64,000 bases of DNA from Pavona decussata. Lineage: Eukaryota. The position numbers and the translations under genes are program-made. Under the pieces are notes generated by a model. The model searched no databases. It had not been told where the DNA came from and saw only the letters and a program-made list of their open reading frames with translations. Where the stretch lies: contig CDRNST010000148.1 in the NCBI GenBank assembly GCA_977016875.1, positions 2,418,001-2,482,000 on the forward strand, given 5' to 3'. Of this stretch, positions 5,963 through 63,922 are shown piece by piece (position 1 is the first letter of the stretch; every line of letters begins with the position of its first letter).

Positions 5963-8900
5963 ATGACAGATTATATTTACCTGGTTGTTTTGTGCTTTTT
6001 CTTCTGCAGTATTGCAGTAAACGTCAGAGCAGATCTGCCAGGTTATTGTGGAAAGGAAAGCTATGCTTACACTCCGCTAAGAAAGAGTGCTAGTGGGCAA
6101 TATACGCTGAAACAAGTTCATGTTGTTATAAGGTACGTAACCCTTACTTGCGTGCACGCAATGGTCTGCAACCTGTTTTGAGGACTTTATTGTTTCGATC
6201 ATGAATAAATCCACGTGTTGGTTTAGTGGGATTCAGATCCCAGCGTAGCTAACTATTTTTTAGTTGAAAGGAAATGGTAGGTCTTGTTTGGATAGAGGTG
6301 TGGTAAAGCCGCGGAAGCGAGAGGGTTTATATAAAATTAGATAAGTTCCAACCTCAAGTTCCTAAAAAAAAAAAAATTTTATTTTTTAAAACAACGAGAA
6401 ACAAACAACACCGCGTGAAAAGACTTTGCACTTGATATCTTGAATCAGATGAATGGTCACAGTTGAGAATATAAAAAATTGCAAATTGCATGACTCATGA
6501 TCACATGTGATTTGATCTCGGAAGGTGGGTGTCAATGTCAATTTAAAAAGAGAAAAATGCTCAGTTCCTGTTAATGTCTAAATTACTTAGTTGGTACTTT
6601 TCTAAATCCATTTGTTGTTTTCATCACCCAGCCATGCATAAGTTGATTCATTTTCAGTATTCCCCCCTAAATTTTGAGCAGTTGTGTGTAGAGTGGGGGT
6701 GTGGGTGTCCAAGACGTCAGCAGACATACAATTGAACAATAGGGTTAGGTTAGGTAATCAATATCATGTTAAATTTCCCATTGTGGTCTTTGGTAATTTT
6801 GAATGGATTATTGCAAATTTCAGTCATCTTGCAATATTGGATTTCCTACTTCTTGTTTAGTTGTAATCTGAGAAATCAAGAGCCTTAACTGCTCAAGTTT
6901 GACTGGACTATAGTTTTGGTCCATTTTGTTGAGGGACATCTGTACATTAGATGAGTTACAGCTGTAGATGATGCATTTCTAAATTACAAACTAATGCAAT
7001 GGCAGCCTCAACTCACTAGCACATACTCATGTTGTTTGAGTTGTACAAATATATTTTGTAATGCCTAATGGCCAAAGTACATGGCAAAGTTTGCTAACGA
7101 CATTACTGGGGAGTAGTAAAAATAAATTTAGAACTTGCACATATAGAGAGTGTGTACTAAAGCCATCCATTCACTAACTGGCACAGCACAGTGGCACATA
7201 CTTAACACCACCTGAGTTGTTGGCTTTTTTAAACCTTTGTTGAATTTTGGTGTACTGGTTTGTTTTAACCTTACCAAAGCTTGTTACAAACTGGGTACCC
7301 TGTGATTTTGGACAAATGCGGTTGATCTTTCTAACATGATTTTTGGAAACCGAATTGACTCAAAGAAAATATGCAACTTTATACAGTCACATCTCATTTA
7401 TGTCTAAATATTATTTTGCAGACATGGTGACAGGACCAGGGCTTTTGCTGCACCTTGCTGGGATAATGACACTGCTGAATGGGACTGTCTGCTGTCTTCA
7501 GCTTCCATCCCAGTCATCAAACATGACATCCATGATATAACTGTCAGCAGGGTATACAGAGATGGTATGTACATATATATGTTTTGGTCTGTAGTATATT
7601 TTATGAGTTGTGCTGTATTTTGATGCTCTCACGGGGTGAGTCAAAATACAAACAACATGACTAGTTAGTACAATATTATACATGGATACTTCAAAAACAT
7701 TTGACAAGAGATTTATTACCCAACTACTGAAAATATGTACTAAATCATAAAGAAGTGAAGTTTCATACCCTAGGTTCTTGACCAATAGTTTCAACCCCTT
7801 AACCCATACTAACTATTAATGAAATTGTACCCCTTGGACACTAACAATAATTTTTATTCCACTTGTTTCTTATACCGATGTCTCAAAGACATGCCAAGGC
7901 CTCATTTTTTCCAGACAAGTGCCAAGTGTAATCTTTGCATTAGAATTTCTTCTTAGTAATTGCAGCATCATATTCATAGCCTTCTACAAATTATTAATTA
8001 GGCATTTAAAATCACATTTTAACCCCTGGTTGGTTATGACCAATATCCAATTTGTACATTCACCGTCATTATCTTTATACCAGTACTGTTGTATTCTAAG
8101 CATGTGTCAGTAGTCTTTTTAGGTGTTGCCCTTATTAAACAAGTCTTTCCTAAACTGATGTCATGTTTTTGTTGATATAAATTTACAGCGTACATGGCAG
8201 GCCGTAATGACATGAAGGGTGACTGCGGTTTAGGCCATCTTACCTTCAAGGGATATAAACAACAAGTGCTTAATGGGGAGAATTTGCGCAAGGCTTATGT
8301 TGACACTGGATTTCTTTCTCCTGACTATCACATCCAGGAGGATTTTTTCCGCACTGATGGTGAGTTATTTTAATTTGTTAATTAATAATGATAATCTGTT
8401 ACCACCATGCAATGAAGAAGATGATATTTACAAATTATAAAATTTTTACTTGGATTTTATTCCAATTTCTGGCAAAAAGCCTGATCCTTATCATTTTGTT
8501 TTGTATTATTTTGTTCATAACTGGCCACCAAAATCTGAGCCTGTGATATGCAACTGAGTGGTTGATTACTTAAAATCTTAATGTTATCACTTTTGAACTC
8601 TAAAAAATGCTAAGAGTTTTCAATGCCAGTCTGTTTTTTTTTCTCCAGCAAACAAGATTTGGGAAACTTAGTAGGGTTTATTGATGGGCAATAATCACTG
8701 CCTCAAATCGTGCCATCTTGGGGTATTGGAATTTTTCAGGTTCCTCTGTGATCTGTCTCTTCCAGTGATCCACTGGTCAGCTTTAAGCCGCGGCCACACG
8801 AGCAATTTTTTGCTCGCGCAGGTGATGCGATTTTTTCAAATTTTGTCGCGTCACCAGCGCGAGAGGGTGGCTAAACGAGTGACAAATTCTAGTGAGTTTG

Positions 8901-11900
8901 GCGACAAATTGAAAGCTGCGTGAATCGCGTACTTTAAGAGACCTGGCGCTACAAACAGACTGATGGCAGACGGCCCTTTCGGAGGAGGATGTTGTTTTTC
9001 GTCTATTTTCATTCTTCTTCTTGACGATAAAAAGCAAACGAAGGAAGAAGAAGATTAAGAAAAGGTCAACATGGGTCTGTCCGTGGCTCGCAAAGAGAAA
9101 GGAACAAGGACTTTACCATCAACTTCTGAAGGAAATTTCAGTCGACCGTTGATATCCCAGTGTTTCCGAGCTATTGCGGATGACGAGGCTTAGTTGCAGG
9201 GTGGCTACACGGGCACTATCTCAACGATTTTGTCGCGAAAATTTCAATTCTGGCGACTTTTTTTGTGTGATTTTTTCACCTGTCGCGTCGCCAGTTTGAG
9301 GGTAGCTACACGTGCGATTTTCATCTCGCACTGGTGACCATCAAAATTTGAAAAAGTCGAATCACCTGCGCAAGCAAAAAATCGCGCATGTGGCTGTGGC
9401 TTTAGTGACATGGTCTTCATGTCTGAATGATGTACATTTATATTCACAATTGACTGCTGTATACAAAACAGGTGCTTTAACTTGCGTTTGCTGTCAAAAA
9501 ATTGTGTTATTTGGTAAAATAAAAGAAAAGATTTTCAAACTTTGTTTATAAATAATACAAATTGTCCTTAGATTCATTCAATCAATCTCTCGAATGTGTT
9601 TTTTTTTGTTTGTTTTTAAAGATATGTCAAGAACCAGACAGGTGAGCTGTAATTACCCTGAAGATTTTTGCCTAATATAGTGCATTGGTATTTTACAAGG
9701 AAATCTCCCTCTAAAAAAATCTTACTTAAAATTTACACAAAATTCAACTGCTATGGCATTTTGAAACACCTGACATCTGGTATAGCTCTAGTTCGATTAT
9801 CTGCAGAGTTCCACAATGAAGTTCAAATTGTGGAGAGAGCCAATTAAGCAGTACATACTCTGTGGTACTGTTTCATGATTATGCTGCAGAAGGTGATAAA
9901 TCTTACATAATTTTCATTTTGTGGAAAACAAATCCCTAAGTTTTGAACAAGAAATTAATGAAAGCTGGTTTTTGGGCAGTGCATTCTTTTTGTATATGTG
10001 TATTAAAAATCTTAAAAGTATTTGTTTCTAATATTTGGATGCTTGGCCCTGCTACTAGAACCGTGTGCTTGTGCTATAGGTTATTTAAATGTTTTTATGC
10101 TTCCTTAGAGTAACTGAAGAATGGCTATTTTTATGTTTATTTTTATTTTTATTTTTATGAAGGATTTGCAGTTGAAAGTAATTCAGGGTTACAGCTTGCT
10201 TTTTTTTTGGCACTAATTCTTTGTTGAGAATTATCTTAGTCTGTAGTTGAGAATTACTTCATATAATTTATTTCTTTGACAAACTTGTTTTGTGTTAAAC
10301 AACACGTTTTGCCATTGTTCTCTGCAGTCTGCTCAAGCTCTTGTATTAGCGCTGTTCCCGCCATCTGCACCTTCCCAAGGCAAATCGCAGGTTGTTGACA
10401 TTCATGTCATGGATAGAGATTACGATGACATTGAGCCAAATCCACGGTAAAATAATTTCGGTAAAACTATTGTTACATCCAATTAGTTAGGCTTGTCCAG
10501 TTAAACCTTTAAGCTTTCATATCAATGTACATATTAAATTTGTCCAATTGGTTTCAAGGTTTGGGGGAATGAAACAACAGAAATTACATTGAGGTTCAAA
10601 GATGAATGATTTATTTATTTTGTTTTATTCCCCTAAGCCTCAAAGCCAAGCTAGAATTTTAATATAAATTATTTTCAAAATTGATCTATTCATGTTCTCT
10701 CTATATTTCTTATGGTTTTAGTTGGGAGAATTTGTTTTAAGATCAAGGCATTTAATCTTGGGTGATCATTTCCTTATTCTCATTTTATACTTACCTGTGT
10801 GTTTGTAGCCTCCCACGCAGACGTTCTTCGGAGTTTGTCACGCGTTCCTGCCCCACGAACGTCTGCTGAAACAAACAGCCACTTCTGTTCGTCGGCAAAT
10901 TGCCTTTGTCTGAACAGACCATTCAGCATTGACTCATTATGACAAGTAAAGCCAATCACATACTGCGAAACAACGGAAATCATCACCCGTGGAGATATTT
11001 TCGCTTCCGGACGTGCATACAGTTTATACGATTGAAATTTTTCCTTCCACAACACCGGTCACCCTGCATTTTCTTCAGTGATTTCACTGAGAGAAGCGGC
11101 AAGAATTCCAAGATTTGCCAATTTGTCTATCTGGTCTTTCATAAGATTTACAAGCGGCGAAACCACAACAACAATCAGTGACCAGCAGCTTCAAGAATTG
11201 AATTGTAAACAAACGATAGAGCTTGATAAATAAGTGACTTTCCATAACCAGTTGGAAGGTTTACGAACACATTAGTTTTCTTCTGCGCAAATTGCACTAT
11301 AACTTCTCTTTCATACGCATTCAACTCTCTTATACCAAACGTTTGGCATACATGACGAAAAACCACATTATTTTAAGTCCGCCAGCCTGTAAAGGGTAAT
11401 ATTTTTAATATCAAATACGAGTTTACCCAAAGTTGGGAAAGGGCTCCTGATTGGTCCGCAGTTGACAAAGGGAAGTGGCTGTTCGTTTCAGCAGACGTTC
11501 ATGGGGCAGGAATGCGTGACGAACCCCTAAGAACGTCTGCGTGGGAGGCTAGTGTGTTTGTTGAAGTATATAGTGTTATAATAATAATTATTGTGGGATT
11601 TGACTGTTTTTATGGCTTTCTTGTAGCACAAAATGCCTATTTATACTTTTGGTGTTCTTTGCCCTTAAGTCCAAACCAAACTTTGCAAAAATATTAAGCA
11701 ATGTGGTACTAACAAATGCATTATGTAAGCTGACAATTGCAAACAAATAAATTATTTGTTAAAATTAAATCCAAGCTCATCAGTTTTTGCATAATTTAGT
11801 AAACTCCCCTCTTACATGTACAAACTGCCTGAATAACCTCTTTATCTTTGTATTATTACTAGTTATAATTATTATTGCTTTGCTTTCTTGGTTCCCATTG

Positions 11901-52609: not shown

Positions 52610-55255
52610 TCAAGACGGCATGTTCTCAATTCCATCAATGGGTCGAACCCTCATCGTATGGACTTTCGAGATCATTTTGACATTTGTTGTATATTGTCCA
52701 ATTTCAGCTTTCATGAACTCATTTGTGTTTTGCTCTGGGTGAAACAAGATCACAAAGAGTTTAGGTGCAAATACGCACAGAAGAAGTCCATATGCAGTGA
52801 CCAGGGCAGTGATGCAGGCCACTATGGTTGTGTAAAATCCCTCCAGGGACGAATCCATTGGAAAATAGATTGCCCACGAGATCAGAAGCACGTACATGGC
52901 CAGACCAATGTATCTTGTCTCGTTGAAATTTTCGGGGAGTCGTCTGGCTTTGAAGGCATAGATAGCGCACAAAAGGGAAAGGAATATGAAATACGTGAAC
53001 ATGACCGCTCTAAGCACCTTCCCCAGGGTTGTCCTGAACGGCAAACAGGTATTAAATACGTGTGTTTGTGGACGTATCTCCTGGTGCTGGTATGGAGAAT
53101 CTAAAGAAAGCCATAGCACTGTGAGAATGACTTCAACGATGTTGAGTGCGAGGACCACGAGAAATTGTCGTTTGCGGTTCACGATGTAGCGCTTGAACCA
53201 GTTAGGGATGATGTCAGTTTGAAATGCGCGGACCAGGCGGTTTGTTTTGAGGAAGAGGATGGATACGCAAGCTGTGTTGATGAAGTACCTACAGGGGTAC
53301 ACGATGCAGCAAAGAGTTGTCGTGGGTGGAGCAAGATGGAGAATCGTGAGCAAGAAACATGAAGCAATTGCGAAAAGCAAGAGAAAGCTTAGTTCGCGAT
53401 TGGAAGCCCTCACCAATGGAGTGTACTGGTTCTTCACGAACACAGCGAAGGTCAGGCAAGTTCCAAACAAACCAATTGCCGTTAGAATCGAACACACTAT
53501 AGCAGTGGTGTCTTTCCATTGAATGTTGATAACTGGCAAAGGTAGACATGTTGTGCCATCTTCATTGGACATATGTTGTTCTGGACACTCTGTGCAGTTG
53601 GGAGAACTGTACTGTGTGCTTACACTGCCTACAGAACATCTGATGCACTCCCAACAACACGACACTGTGGCGGTCTGCTTAGTTCCTGGGGGACAACTTT
53701 GGCTGCATGAAGACGTCGGAGGCTCACTCTTTCCGTCGCTCCACTTGACCAATTTACTTTTGATTGTAATTTTGGGATGTGTTCCTCCTCTCCAGGTACC
53801 CACCTTTACGTTTTCGTAATTCTCTCCCTGTTTCTGAAAGTTTACGATATCGTACGATGAAGAAAGAGGATCCCCGTTTTTGGTGAACTGTACTTGCCCC
53901 GTAATTCCGCGAAAGCTTATTTTTCTGATGTAAGACAATATATCCTTCGGTTTGATGTTGGAATTTGATTTTGGACATTTTCTACTCTGTGACAAGCCTC
54001 GAGGCTCTGTACATTTGAACAGAGAGTCGAGCGCGTGCGCAAGGGCATAAACAGCGTCCGTGAGATAGGGAATAAACGCGTTGTGTAGTTTGGCGAAGGC
54101 TCGCTCGTCCACTTTAGCCTGACAATCGAGTGCATCTTTTGAGCAGTTAAGGTGGTTTGTCCAAAACTCGTCCCACCATGGATTGGCACTTGTCCGAGTG
54201 TCTTCTACTGTGAGTTCTTTGAGGTGCTTCTCCAATGGCTGGTCTGCAAATAAGTGGGGTCTTATTCCTAATGCTCCCTTGAGGATCGCAGAGTTCTCTT
54301 CTAACACGTCAGGATTCATAACTGCAATTGCTTCGCTGATAAGAAATGTTCGTCCCTCCAAACCTTGAGCAGTCGCTTCTTGTAGGAATCGTTTCGCTGG
54401 TTCGTAGTTACTCCAAAGGACGACCACTTTGATGTTTTTAGCCTCTCTTAGCTTCCTCACGATTGTTTTTATTTTTCCTTTGTATCCAGACCGTGTGAAG
54501 TATTCCGAAAACGCGATGCAGAACGTCTTCCGATCATACGCTTCTCGTTCCAATGCACGCAAACCGTACCGTCCGTATGAATGATCAACGGCCACCGCCG
54601 CAATGTACGTCCATCGATAGTGCTCTATAATGTCCACCATGGCTTTAGCTTGCTCACCGTCGGGTGGTATGGTGCGAAAGAATGCGTTGAAGTAAGGTGA
54701 GCTCAGTTCCTCGCTGGTAGCGAAAGGACTTATAGTAGGAATGCCATCCACTTGAAGTAAACTTGAGACTAGTGTGCTACTGCTTGAATCTTCCGTGCCA
54801 ATAACCGCAAAGATGGGTGCCGTCAGATTCTGTACACGTATTGTAAGTTCTGATTTTAATCCAGTCCCATATTTCTGCTCTTCGAACAGTTCATTAAGAT
54901 AATTACTCTTGACAAAGTCGTTCGCCATTTTCATGGCCAGTACAGGTGAATCGCAGTTATCTCGAATGTCAAACCCCAGCGTCACATTTGGAAGCAAGTT
55001 AGGGTCATTGTTTATTCTCTCGATTGCAAAAGTGATGGCCTCGATGTATCCGAGGCCAAAAGCATAAAACTCACCGCAGTTTTCCTTTACAGTTTTCACG
55101 TGAAGTGGGAGGATAACTCCAAGAGTGACGTTTCCTTTCTGGTAGAATCGTTTGGTGTGACAAGAAACCGGTGAAAAACAAAGCAATGGCAACAGCAACA
55201 GTACCTGAAGTGACATTTTCTTACGAATGTCGAAAGCGGGGATGCCCAGATACAT
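52610..55255 (-). CDS. Class C GPCR, calcium-sensing receptor / GPRC6A-like; intronless CDS
   Basis: 881-aa ORF (likely start 55216, MSLQVLLLLPLLCFSPVSC signal peptide); Venus flytrap (LLPNVTLGFDIRDNC, FFRTIPPD, WTYI..YG, NPWWDEFW); Cys-rich domain (SSCSQSCPPG..CCWECIRC); 7TM (TPLVRASNREL, LFLKTNR, AFKARRLPENFNET, FAPK..ILFHPEQN). Confidence 0.96.
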   Translation of the reverse strand: MYLGIPAFDIRKKMSLQVLLLLPLLCFSPVSCHTKRFYQKGNVTLGVILPLHVKTVKENCGEFYAFGLGYIEAITFAIERINNDPNLLPNVTLGFDIRDNCDSPVLAMKMANDFVKSNYLNELFEEQKYGTGLKSELTIRVQNLTAPIFAVIGTEDSSSSTLVSSLLQVDGIPTISPFATSEELSSPYFNAFFRTIPPDGEQAKAMVDIIEHYRWTYIAAVAVDHSYGRYGLRALEREAYDRKTFCIAFSEYFTRSGYKGKIKTIVRKLREAKNIKVVVLWSNYEPAKRFLQEATAQGLEGRTFLISEAIAVMNPDVLEENSAILKGALGIRPHLFADQPLEKHLKELTVEDTRTSANPWWDEFWTNHLNCSKDALDCQAKVDERAFAKLHNAFIPYLTDAVYALAHALDSLFKCTEPRGLSQSRKCPKSNSNIKPKDILSYIRKISFRGITGQVQFTKNGDPLSSSYDIVNFQKQGENYENVKVGTWRGGTHPKITIKSKLVKWSDGKSEPPTSSCSQSCPPGTKQTATVSCCWECIRCSVGSVSTQYSSPNCTECPEQHMSNEDGTTCLPLPVINIQWKDTTAIVCSILTAIGLFGTCLTFAVFVKNQYTPLVRASNRELSFLLLFAIASCFLLTILHLAPPTTTLCCIVYPCRYFINTACVSILFLKTNRLVRAFQTDIIPNWFKRYIVNRKRQFLVVLALNIVEVILTVLWLSLDSPYQHQEIRPQTHVFNTCLPFRTTLGKVLRAVMFTYFIFLSLLCAIYAFKARRLPENFNETRYIGLAMYVLLISWAIYFPMDSSLEGFYTTIVACITALVTAYGLLLCVFAPKLFVILFHPEQNTNEFMKAEIGQYTTNVKMISKVHTMRVRPIDGIENMPS

Positions 55256-59865: not shown

Positions 59866-62800
59866 TTAGTTATTTTGAAATTGTGCAAGTGACTTATAGC
59901 CAACATTAAGTTTTACGTTGTTGTTCTGGCGCAGAGATCTGATGTAATTAAATGCCGCTTTCTCCTCGTCTGTTGTTATTCCCAAAGTAAGGTACATATT
60001 TTTTAGGCCGTCAGATCTTGCTTTCTCCACAATACCGAGGGCATCTGCTTTGGCCTGGGCACCAATAACAGTAGCCTGAGCAGTTGCATTCTGGGCAATC
60101 TCCCTGGCCTCGTTGTAAATTATATTTTTCTGTTTTTCGGTTTCTTTGCGGACCACCTGTAATGTATGGAAACACAAGGATGTGGTTGTGGATTTACTTT
60201 AACTTAAAGATGAAGGAAATTCTAAAGGAACGACAAGGTAGGCTATGTGGCTGGCTGTACTGTGTTTGTGCGACTTTACAGCTCTTTCAAACTATGCAAC
60301 CGACAAGCTAGCGAGGTTACCACTGCATGACATTTCGTTTTCTTAAGCCCTTGCATAGATTTCTACGCTCTTTGCCCTCTAGCGATACCACAATATCTGC
60401 ACAAAAAGCCTTTTTAATACCCATGCGGCTCATGACAGCGTCTGAGCACAGAGAAGCAGACCCAGGGGAGTTTTACAGTGGAAAGAAAATGTTTTTGTTT
60501 GCATTTTTTATCATCAGTCTCTCCTCCCCCGTTCTTCATGGAACCTGAGGGATTCGCGTTGGCTTTTACTGTTCCTTCCCCACCCTCCCTACTTACACAA
60601 AACCCTAAATTCGCCCCTAGGGAGGGGAGAGGCTCTGGCTAAGCCATGATCAGTGGCGTTGTCTTTAAGAAAAGGTTAATTCTTTCGCACACCTTAAATG
60701 TTAAAAAATCAAAATAGAACATCCTGAAACGGGTAGGATTAGCCATTGCTTAGCTCTGGGAAGAAACTCGATTCTGTTGTGATTTGTCGCTAGTTTAAAC
60801 CTTCATTTCGAGTGTAAATTGAAAGGTTACCTTCTCCTTCAGTTCAAACTCTGCCCGTTCCTCCTCAGCTGCTTCTGTGACCTGACGCAGGTATCGACTC
60901 TTCACATCTTCGTGCACATCAACTGCGAGGAGCTGGAAATATCTGACTTCCACGAAAATCCCCTTCTCATTGCTCTTGCAGAGGGAAATAGGGATACAAT
61001 AACCACAAGGCGGCATATCTTCTGCCTTTGTTGGACACGTCTCTCTGCAGCAACCATCCAAGCGTTTGGATAATGCTTTGAAAAGCTCTTTCTCGATATT
61101 CTCCCGATTTCTGGTAAATTAAAACAAATGTTTGTAAGAAAAAAGAAAAGATTGCGGGCTTTAATTTTGGACGGTAAAAAATATCGTTTTCTTCTCTAGC
61201 CCATTAAGTCTTTCTGGCAACTTTTAAGACGAGCAAAGAAAACGCCTCGACCCTATTTGTTCAATTATACCTTACTTGTGCAGTTGGAATCTTTCAAACA
61301 AAATCACTAACTTTGACGATGTCGACTGTCTATCAGGGAGCGTTCTTCAGAATCAATGAGATCACTTGTACATGGTTCGATGGCACCACCGAATTCGCTA
61401 TAAATTTACAAAGGAAACGTTTGTACAAGAAAAGTGTTTGCTACGAATAAAGGTCTACCAGCTCTGTTCGATATTAGTCCCGAAAATATGTTTACAAAAA
61501 TCAGTTACAGTAAAAGAAAAATTAGACGCACTGTGAACTGCAATATTAGAGAGATTTAGAATTCAAAAGTTTTCGACAGACGGCAGACGGCAAATTTAAA
61601 ACCACCGGGCCTCGAATGAACATAACAGCACAAACTGAAAGTAGTGTATGGCAACTTGCATTTGAACGCGTTGGGTTCATGCAAACTGAAAGGATTAGAA
61701 GAAGGTTTTCACTCAAACTTTTTTCCCGCCAGATGCTGAGATGCATATACCTGATGTAATCGTCGATCGGCAAATCCGCTGCCCTTCCTTTTATGGCGTC
61801 GATTGCCGTTCCTTTGACAACGGGTTTGTAGTCAACATTGTAGGCTTCATGTAAATCTGGTAGAAAGTCCTTTCTCAGAAAATACTGAAAAGTGCAGGTG
61901 ATTTTGATTTCGATCTTGTCTCCTGTCCAGACAGCGATCTTATCCAGCTTGACAAAGTGTGCATTGGCTTGGAACACTTTGAAAGTGAAGTCCGGGCCAA
62001 CGAAGTATCTTCCCGAGGTATACACCTTGTCGACGTCCACAAAACCAGTTGACTTACGTTTTTTGAAGCCGAGCTGTTTTGAAATATAATAATATTTGCA
62101 TATGTTTCACTTCCCTTTGTTCTGGGTTGATTTTCTAAAATTAATAGTGATTGGAACTGTTTACAACTAGACATCGTTTTTAAGAACAGCGAAAAACCTT
62201 TCTATTCACAGCTGACCATGACCTCCTATGGATGTGTAAGGTTTAATATCCTAAAATGTGGGTTGCATGCAAACAATCATTTGTTTTGCAGGGGGATATG
62301 AACATGTCACATTTTAAACCTATTTTTTGGTGATTTTAACTTCCTTGAGAGTATGCAAAGTTTATTAGAAATTGGTAATTAATATCCCTTACACTTGAAG
62401 AAAAAGTGTTTAGCAGATCAGGAAATTCTTTTGCATCTAGAACAATATTATTTTACTATGACGTAACATAATTCTCTTGGGCGTAAATGTTACTACAGGA
62501 AACATCTCCTCGTTGAATTTTGGTGCATTGCCAAGCCAGAAAAATGCGGTCAATATAGTGTGGAAAAACGAAATGTTAAACTTCTTGACGTTGTGGATGA
62601 AAAATTATATGATAAAATCGATGCGAAGACGCAAAGTTTCGAAGTTGTCACCGATATTACAATCTTACGCCCCCCTCCCCCCAAAAAAGTCCAAACTAGT
62701 TTATAGATTGCATGTCAAATGCAAGTAAACAATCCTTTGTGTATTCTTTATGCTGCTTTATGGTGGTAACGTTCTTCTTGACGTGATGAAGTCCAATTTG

Positions 62801-63299
62801 TGGTTTGCAAGTAAAACTCTGCTAATATATATGTGAATGATATGGTAAAGCGAGCGCGAATCCCGGGACGCGAATGTAGAATGAACGGTCAAGAATACGG
62901 AGAATAGGACGATCGAGATTGTTTTGATTTTAAAAACCAATCCCTGCTTTTCATAACCTCAGCGGGGGTGGTGGAACTAAGAAAGGAAGATACTGTCTCG
63001 TAAATACATTTCCCGGACATGTATTTTTGCCCATCTCAGTTGATCTCTTATATGTTTTGGAGGATATGCAAGGCTTTTGGCTATCAAGAGGGCTTTCACA
63101 ACAATCAGTGTGGTTTGAAGCGCTTCGAAACGTCTCAATCAGTAATAATCCCGTGCAAATTGATGATCTTCGCTGAATAAACTCGAAAGCTTACCTCGTA
63201 ATATTCAACATCAGAGAAACTTATTGGTATCAAAATAACGATGAGAAGAACTGCAACTCCAATGACACCGATGATAATAATTTGAGTTCCGTTCGCCAT
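59866..63299 (-). CDS. SPFH / band-7 (prohibitin-like) membrane protein, 332 aa, 4 exons
   Basis: Exons 63299-63195, 62073-61751, 61110-60831, 60156-59866; phases 0/2/0; 999 nt. N-terminal TM, then SFSDVEYYELG, GRYFVGP, WTGDKIEIKITCTFQY, DDYIRNRENIEKEL, IFVEVRYFQLLAVDV and an Ala/Glu-rich coiled coil (AQAKADA). Confidence 0.85.
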
Positions 63300-63807
63300 G
63301 TTGATGGCAAATTATGTTAATTTTGTTTATGTATGTATCCAGGCCACCGCCTTAAAATACAGCTAACAATAGAAAAATTCATTGTTTATTTCGGTATTGT
63401 CAAACGCGCAGATGAAAAACACTTTGACAGATGCTATTTAAAGATTAAGTGTTTGTTCACAATTTTCGGGTACAGGCGCGATCAATTTCGCTGAATTTTG
63501 CATAGGTATCAGCAAAAAGGGTCAAAAAGAAATCACTGCTCAAAACGTTCAGGTTTTAACCATTTAGCAAACATACTCCGCATACGTGCATACCTGCATG
63601 ATTTTCCGTTTACCACTGAACCTGGAATATAAGTGGATCATTTCCCTGAGGTCATATAAGCCTTTCAAAACAGTGGAAACATTTAATATGCGCATATATT
63701 TGAACAGAAGTGTCACGGCGTGAAAGAGCTGACAGGCATCACTCGGGTGTAGCCAACTCGCAGCTTCTTCAACACTGTTTCCCGTTCTAGTTCAGCGGCG
63801 TTGAAAT
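63300..63807. promoter_or_regulatory. Probable bidirectional promoter
   Basis: 508 bp between divergent ATGs at 63299 (-) and 63808 (+). Confidence 0.55.
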
Positions 63808-63922
63808 ATGGATTTCTTAAGTAGTAACAAAACGAAGGTAGTTTGTGCTGCCGTGGTTGCCGTTATAATTTTCATCGGTGCAATGGTAGGGACATCTCTA
63901 CGCAAGCTGAGCACAGAAGAAG
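63808..63922 (+). CDS. First exon of a probable second SPFH-family membrane protein (continues beyond the window)
   Basis: MDFLSSNKTKVVCAAVVAVIIFIGAMVGTSLRKLSTEE + G|gtattt (phase 1): TM helix then SLRKLSTEE, aligning with SFSDVEYYE of the neighbour; both exons end at the equivalent Glu. Confidence 0.6.

Follow-up and report, generated by a model that had tools for sequence, protein, structure and literature searches.

Do two SPFH genes that lie head to head in a coral genome encode the partners of a membrane scaffold that has so far escaped description? This question is raised by a stretch of 64,000 nucleotides from Pavona decussata (GenBank assembly GCA_977016875.1, contig CDRNST010000148.1, forward-strand positions 2,418,001 to 2,482,000), the whole of which we call the window, and in which an earlier note, made from the letters of the DNA, had proposed a heteromeric SPFH system co-regulated by a bidirectional promoter. 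SPFH cages such as those of prohibitin, erlin, flotillin and HflK/C have been solved only recently; their presumed role is to enclose patches of membrane that serve proteases, ligases or lipids. Our follow-up supports the proposal in part, and comparative evidence strengthens it: both genes are intact, they belong to two families whose duplication is older than the split between animals and diatoms, and the divergent layout recurs from diatoms to amphioxus. By analogy with the known cages, we give a rough probability of 0.55 to the reading that the locus encodes two subunits of an undescribed, two-paralogue heteromeric SPFH membrane cage. Among two-paralogue SPFH scaffolds the pair appears to be a new variant, so far unstudied, with a gene-pair organisation that is conserved to an unusual depth.

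Two intact SPFH genes in a divergent arrangement

The minus-strand gene had been described as a complete SPFH gene, and it is one: it spans window positions 63299..59866 in four exons, starts with an ATG at 63299, ends with a stop codon at 59868-59866, has GT-AG boundaries at all introns and encodes an intact protein of ~332 aa. Exactly 508 bp separate its start codon from that of a second gene on the plus strand, as claimed, and the 38-codon plus-strand exon with a transmembrane helix, an S-x3-[VL]-x3-E motif and an intron donor is present at 63808..63922. Only this first exon of the partner had been visible in the window. Once the sequence was extended (L002, window 63001-73000), the partner proved to be a complete, intact gene of four exons and ~308 aa that starts at 63808 and ends ~3.7 kb beyond the window. 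Exon searches found each gene as a single copy in the 602-Mb assembly. The elements of the locus are as follows, in window coordinates unless L002 is named.

59866..60156, minus strand: minus-gene exon 4, 96 codons plus stop (coding 60156..59869), encoding the last part of the long wall helix, then a short helix and C-terminal strands, with a family-conserved N-A-[ST] sequon
60831..61110, minus strand: minus-gene exon 3, second half of the SPFH domain, a ~26-aa Cys-rich insert with six Cys conserved in the family, and the beginning of the long helix
61751..62073, minus strand: minus-gene exon 2, first half of the SPFH domain with its invariant RKSTG motif
63195..63299, minus strand: minus-gene exon 1, 35 codons for a short tail, a transmembrane helix and S-x3-V-x3-E, with a phase-0 GT donor
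63300..63807, no strand: divergent intergenic region of 508 bp, a candidate bidirectional promoter
63808..63922, plus strand: plus-gene exon 1, 38 codons plus 1 nt for a basic tail, a transmembrane helix and S-x3-L-x3-E, with a phase-1 GT donor
L002 1611..1872, plus strand: plus-gene exon 2 (exons 2-4 with the stop codon correspond to window 64611..67693)
L002 2687..2834, plus strand: plus-gene exon 3
L002 4298..4690, plus strand: plus-gene exon 4, followed directly by the stop codon, which ends at L002 4693

The splice junctions of the minus gene agree with transcript-derived orthologues: P0006 and P0028 are continuous across the exon 1/2 (EYYE/LGFK) and exon 2/3 junctions, and P0012 and P0022 are continuous across exons 2/3/4, with ...ELKEK/VVRKE... 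corresponding to the exon 3/4 junction. An extra minus-gene exon at 61405..61310, credible in one frame, was considered and ruled out, since its phases do not fit and orthologous mRNAs join exon 2 directly to 61110. Minus exon 2 is 92.5% identical to Porites lutea P0209, and the four exons of the plus gene cover Porites lobata P0302 (302 aa) from end to end at 83-86% identity, with neither gaps nor overlaps and with a single residue left over at each split codon. The nearest named proteins to the pair come from Porites, Montipora and Pocillopora, and orthologues from other corals occur as complete, intron-free open reading frames on contigs of ~1.0-1.6 kb in Logan assemblies of public sequencing data (for example P0028, P0211, P0297, P0298 and P0307), a form that would fit spliced mRNA.

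The two first exons had been said to share one plan at low identity. This stands for the hydrophobic helix, for the motif that follows it (SFSDVEYYE in the minus gene, SLRKLSTEE in the plus gene), for the GT donor next to the motif and for the low identity; it does not extend to the first introns, which differ in phase (0 in the minus gene, 1 in the plus gene). Within the plus family, the first intron keeps the same position and phase 1 in the window, in the contig of another cnidarian-like genome (L006), in Actinia and in Branchiostoma floridae.

The two families are ancient paralogues

The window genes were searched exon by exon, and the full-length orthologues P0209 (minus family) and P0302 (plus family) served as stand-ins in Pfam, NCBIfam, folding and atlas searches. 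The partner does carry the anticipated Pfam Band_7 domain (PF01145): plus exon 2 alone scores 24.4 bits, above the cut-off of 23.6, and P0302 scores 61.4 bits, the corresponding values being 19.3 bits for minus exon 2 and 40 bits for P0209. Exon by exon, identity between the two genes is 22-25% or not detectable, and the two family profiles align over their full length (274 columns; hhalign probability 99.4%, E 1.2e-21), the sole large difference being the ~26-residue Cys-rich insert of the minus family. One genome therefore holds two distinct paralogues of matching architecture, as judged from the profile alignment and from wall helices of 85 and 84 residues, and these comparisons support the view that the genes are ancient paralogues and not a recent duplicate. 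Each family also has conserved features of its own: the plus family has C81 and C133 in 51 of 52 rows, and the minus family has the six insert Cys in 42 of 57 rows and the N-A-[ST] sequon of the wall helix in 34 of the same 57, while plus-family N-terminal tails are basic and the residues right after the minus-family transmembrane helix are acidic.

The age of the duplication was addressed with maximum-likelihood trees of 59 rows and, after removal of long branches (P0331, P0341, P0332, P0081 and P0094), of 54 rows, with distant HflC-like matches as outgroup. Support values from the Shimodaira-Hasegawa-like approximate likelihood-ratio test (SH-aLRT) in the two trees were 100 and 99 for a single minus-family clade and 84 and 96 for a single plus-family clade. 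Each clade holds an animal subclade and a protist subclade, and a choanoflagellate branches beside the animals in the plus clade. Under independent duplications in animals and in protists, the protist sequences of both families are expected to form one clade; forcing all of them together, in a group named after the first tree had been seen, lowered the log-likelihood by 131 (p 5e-42 in the approximately unbiased, AU, test), and independent duplications are thereby rejected. Tree and test together make the duplication older than the animal-diatom split. The divergent linkage is most simply taken to be equally old; the only alternative, transfer of the pair as a unit between lineages, would likewise treat the pair as a unit.

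Both families are restricted in their named matches to cnidarians, amphioxus, echinoderms, molluscs and protists, apart from annelids, which are considered below. An exhaustive HMMER search with plus exon 2 returned at least 150 representatives at E<=0.001 among 1.84 billion, 33 of them at E<=1e-10, and all classifiable full-length matches listed are plus-like. One match, P0035 (5838 aa), was discarded as a family member, being a repetitive artefact that matches query residues 12-35 only. Among named sequences, the plus family is represented in stony corals, Actinia, Actinostola, three Branchiostoma species or hybrids, one sea cucumber and one snail, as well as in the choanoflagellate Salpingoeca urceolata and in MMETSP protists. 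The minus family is represented in corals, anemones, Branchiostoma, starfish and a brittle star, in many molluscs and two annelids, and in two diatoms, Cylindrotheca closterium and C. fusiformis. No named vertebrate, arthropod, nematode, fungus or plant appears in either family list, as obtained by word-based searches in which the 8000 best candidates were scored, a result that is suggestive of absence from these groups.

The names attached to these proteins are generic. Named members of both families are labelled "uncharacterized protein", "hypothetical protein" or "Band 7 domain-containing protein", except that, among protist or metagenome members, one bears an automatic "prohibitin 2" annotation and a few are called "HflC"; the nearest ESM-Atlas clusters bear generic Band 7 names only. 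In the open-access full-text literature we found no description of either family.

The head-to-head layout recurs in distant eukaryotes

We probed the DNA around homologues with both families by tblastn. Divergent plus- and minus-family pairs were found at the following loci, where gaps are measured between start codons for the window and L006 and between called gene models elsewhere.

Window: gap 508 bp
L006, ENA contig of another cnidarian-like genome: gap 365 bp
Actinia tenebrosa, L029: gap ~381 bp
Branchiostoma floridae, L005: gap ~3.3 kb, the adjacent genes LOC118407677 and LOC118407678
Nematostella, L010: partner incomplete
Diatom Cylindrotheca closterium, L011: gap 410 bp
TARA protist scaffold, L012: gap 655 bp
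Lagoon protist contig, L013
JGI metagenome protist contigs, L030-L032: gap 358 bp

On the protist contigs the neighbouring genes are ordinary eukaryotic ones (cofilin, F-box, mTERF and ABC transporters), and these contigs are therefore not animal contamination. Conservation of the layout thus holds for cnidarians, amphioxus, a diatom and protists, and is not seen within 10 kb at four bilaterian loci that are discussed with the other points against a joint function. That the divergent layout is kept from diatoms to amphioxus argues strongly for a functional coupling of the two genes. Between the window and L006 the pair is also inverted as a whole relative to a neighbouring open reading frame of 413 or 433 aa (48% identity), and this inversion, together with the retained position and phase of intron 1, would fit a unit under selection.

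The intergenic region itself (63300..63807) is AT-rich (34-45% GC) and holds no CpG island; TATA-like words lie near 63353-63360 on the minus strand and near 63655-63664 on the plus strand, and are words only.

Predicted folds resemble subunits of two-paralogue cages

AlphaFold2 models were built from a 57-sequence alignment headed by P0209 and a 52-sequence alignment headed by P0302, orthologues that are ~85-90% identical to the window genes, and reached mean predicted local distance difference test (pLDDT) scores of 85.6 and 86.5, respectively. Both models show the same order of elements, namely an N-terminal transmembrane helix, a beta/alpha SPFH domain, a ~85-residue helix (the wall helix, 212-296 in the P0209 model versus 179-262 in the P0302 model), a short helix and a C-terminal tail or strands; they therefore possess the anchor, SPFH1/2, CC1, CC2 and C-terminal strand of a cage protomer. 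With Foldseek, both models align over ~270-340 columns to erlin1/2, PHB1/2 and HflK/C (~E 1e-12 to 1e-14, probability 1.00, 13-19% identity), three systems for which structures of complexes with two paralogous subunits are available; stomatin, major vault protein, QmcA and flotillin rank lower. Sequence comparison reached less far. Single-exon phmmer searches against PDB sequences returned nothing relevant, and profiles and predicted folds were required: the plus-family profile matches Prohibitin-2 best (E 1.6e-11) and then Erlin-1 (2e-7), and the minus-family profile matches no PDB chain at E<1.

These values fall short of orthology with the known systems. For PHB1/PHB2, the best E of 1.6e-11 comes with 14-19% identity and with no match for the minus family, and a canonical PHB1 is encoded elsewhere in the genome (a single 52-aa exon on contig C46, E 1e-24 against human PHB1). 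Canonical flotillin-2 (an 80-aa stretch on contig C318, E 3e-33) and clusters of stomatin-like Band_7 exons (contigs C35 and C110, some exons with TAG stops) are likewise found elsewhere. On NCBIfam TIGR01932 (hflC), P0302 scores 19.9 bits against a cut-off of 134.4 and P0209 has no match, which gives no HflK/HflC equivalog assignment to either family. The pair is thus outside PHB, flotillin, stomatin and HflK/C. For erlin, the plus profile reaches E 2e-7, structural identity is 15-18% and the minus family has no sequence match, making erlin orthology of either gene very unlikely; the case is drawn from sequence distance alone, since the genome has not yielded a canonical erlin gene. The earlier impression that the complete protein is no orthologue of the known animal pairs is borne out in these terms. 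As an aside, the near-identical Band_7 scores on C35 and C110 suggest that these contigs are haplotigs.

The likenesses to the known systems differ in kind. Prohibitin shares the N-terminal anchor, the SPFH domain, the long wall helix and the use of two paralogous subunits per cage, and provides both the best plus-family profile match (PHB2) and a top Foldseek match (8rrh, 9o9z); it differs by the low identity (14-19%) and by its separate canonical PHB1 in the genome, and, compared with it, the new pair has conserved Cys, N-x-S/T sequons and a Cys-rich insert in one subunit. In animals, PHB1 and PHB2 are not known to be neighbouring genes. Erlin1/erlin2, in the endoplasmic reticulum lumen, combine a type II orientation and a luminal SPFH domain with a two-paralogue ring; erlin is the top Foldseek match of the minus family (9vvj, E 1.3e-12) and the system that the topology proposed below most resembles, but stands apart by 15-18% identity and by the lack of a sequence-level match to the minus family. 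Bacterial HflK/HflC, which work with FtsH, are two alternating paralogues that form a cage on the non-cytoplasmic face and are encoded by adjacent, co-expressed genes (Foldseek E 1e-11 to 1e-14; 7vhq, 7wi3); these genes form a co-directional operon, whereas the coral pair is divergent and has no adjacent protease gene. Flotillin-1/2 and stomatin share the superfamily and the cage architecture, the flotillins as a two-paralogue complex (9bq2), but give weaker matches, and canonical flotillin-2 and stomatin genes are present separately. Flotillins and stomatin are anchored on the cytosolic membrane face by a hairpin or lipid.

A proposed two-subunit cage and its alternatives

We propose that each protein would be a single-pass membrane protein with a tail of a few residues, an N-terminal anchor, an SPFH domain, a ~85-residue helix, a short helix and C-terminal strands, and that the two, by analogy with PHB1/2, erlin1/2 and HflK/C, would alternate in a closed ring or cage. 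This cage would sit on the non-cytosolic face of the membrane and fence off a membrane patch. The basic tails of the plus family suggest an N-in orientation. That the bulk of the protein faces the secretory-pathway lumen or the cell surface is suggested by the acidic segment behind the transmembrane helix of the minus family and by the conserved Cys and N-x-S/T sequons (the N-A-[ST] sequon of the wall helix among them); together these features would describe a type II topology. The location may instead be a prohibitin-like one, in the intermembrane space. The divergent arrangement around a spacer of ~0.4-0.7 kb would provide for coordinated and roughly equimolar expression of the two subunits.

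Several observations weigh against such a joint function. At loci of Asterias rubens (L007), Pomacea canaliculata (L008), Apostichopus japonicus (L014) and Dimorphilus gyrociliatus (L016) the partner is absent within 10 kb, and linkage is therefore dispensable in some bilaterians. The Nematostella vectensis locus yielded no more than the C-terminal half of the plus copy (L010 5679-6239, minus strand); this copy may be truncated, incompletely annotated or strongly diverged at its 5' end. A single Exaiptasia contig carries two minus-family genes (LOC110238397 and LOC110238398; P0220 and P0221), and annelids occur in the minus-family list only, so that in some lineages the minus protein may function without a partner. 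An alignment of the window's intergenic region with those of L006 and Actinia revealed no convincing conserved block, and a conserved third gene (a protease or ligase) beside the pair was sought at the compared loci and not found. Finally, homo-oligomers are also among the Foldseek matches, namely stomatin and the Erlin2 oligomer 9wff.

Some of these points could also be accommodated if each gene encoded an SPFH scaffold of its own, a homo-oligomer, possibly in another membrane or cell type than the other, and if the genes lay next to each other only through shared regulatory DNA or an inseparable bidirectional promoter, with no co-assembly of the proteins. The stomatin and Erlin2 homo-oligomers and the four bilaterian loci with an unlinked pair are what such an arrangement would lead one to see, as are the ~26-aa Cys-rich insert by which the families differ and the seemingly wider retention of the minus family among named matches. 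Adjacency and orientation, however, are kept across animals and diatoms, which regulatory entanglement alone could hardly achieve over so long a time; the intergenic sequence itself is not conserved, the wall helices match in length and the closest structural relatives are two-paralogue complexes. We regard independent homomers as unlikely on balance, though worth keeping in mind.

That one SPFH gene underwent an inverted tandem duplication within a single lineage, or that the two genes are neighbours by chance and without any special coupling, is very improbable: tandem SPFH arrays do exist in this genome (the stomatin clusters on C35 and C110), but the two genes share only 22% identity, their amphioxus and diatom orthologues are themselves paired, independent duplications are rejected by the AU test (p 5e-42), and animal contamination of the protist contigs is argued against by their neighbour genes and their lack of introns. 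That the genes are simply coral orthologues of PHB1/PHB2 or ERLIN1/ERLIN2, to which the plus profile's best hits (Prohibitin-2 at E 1.6e-11, Erlin-1 at 2e-7) and one source's "prohibitin 2" label for a protist member might point, can be given hardly any credence in view of structural alignments at only 13-19% identity, a minus profile without a PDB chain at E<1 and the canonical PHB1 (C46, E 1e-24) and flotillin-2 (E 3e-33) found elsewhere.

If the two proteins do form a heteromeric cage, a wider picture can be drawn, which we offer tentatively and would not yet bet on: an additional SPFH cage of eukaryotes, built from two subunits and different from prohibitin, erlin and flotillin, may have been encoded by a divergent pair already in the ancestor of diatoms and animals, near the last eukaryotic common ancestor, may have been kept head to head for well over a billion years, may face the lumen or exterior with disulfide stabilisation, and may have been lost in vertebrates and the usual model organisms. 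Such losses would explain why this SPFH pair has never been studied. A further SPFH pair would broaden the comparative basis for asking what purpose the two-subunit design serves, and this one has useful traits, as it lies outside PHB, flotillin, stomatin and HflK/C, carries a Cys-rich insert in one subunit, is probably oriented towards the lumen or exterior and can be studied in organisms open to experiment such as Nematostella, Exaiptasia, amphioxus and diatoms. It is also among the few divergent gene pairs whose adjacency and orientation are apparently conserved between animals and a stramenopile, a depth of conservation that makes it a natural test case for the persistence of bidirectional pairs.

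Neighbouring genes and local duplications

Minus-family genes have been duplicated locally in anemones, because the gene model of Actinostola sp. P0201 (567 aa) resembles two fused minus-family genes and Exaiptasia has the two-gene contig described above. In L006, a second segment resembling a minus-family exon 1, with a transmembrane helix, SFSYVEYYE and a GT donor, lies on the plus strand at 9121-9297, 1.9 kb downstream of the first exon 1 at 7293-7400, and may represent a partial duplicate or else a first exon used as an alternative.

The neighbour relative to which the pair is inverted is, on the coral side, an intronless 413-aa multi-pass membrane open reading frame without a Pfam family, on the minus strand at L002 7443-8684 (window 70443-71684), and its 433-aa counterpart was found beside the pair in L006 only. 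On the other flank, ~4.6 kb downstream of the minus SPFH gene, an intronless open reading frame of 881 aa (window 52610-55255, minus strand) encodes a complete class C G protein-coupled receptor with ANF_receptor, NCD3G and 7tm_3 domains.

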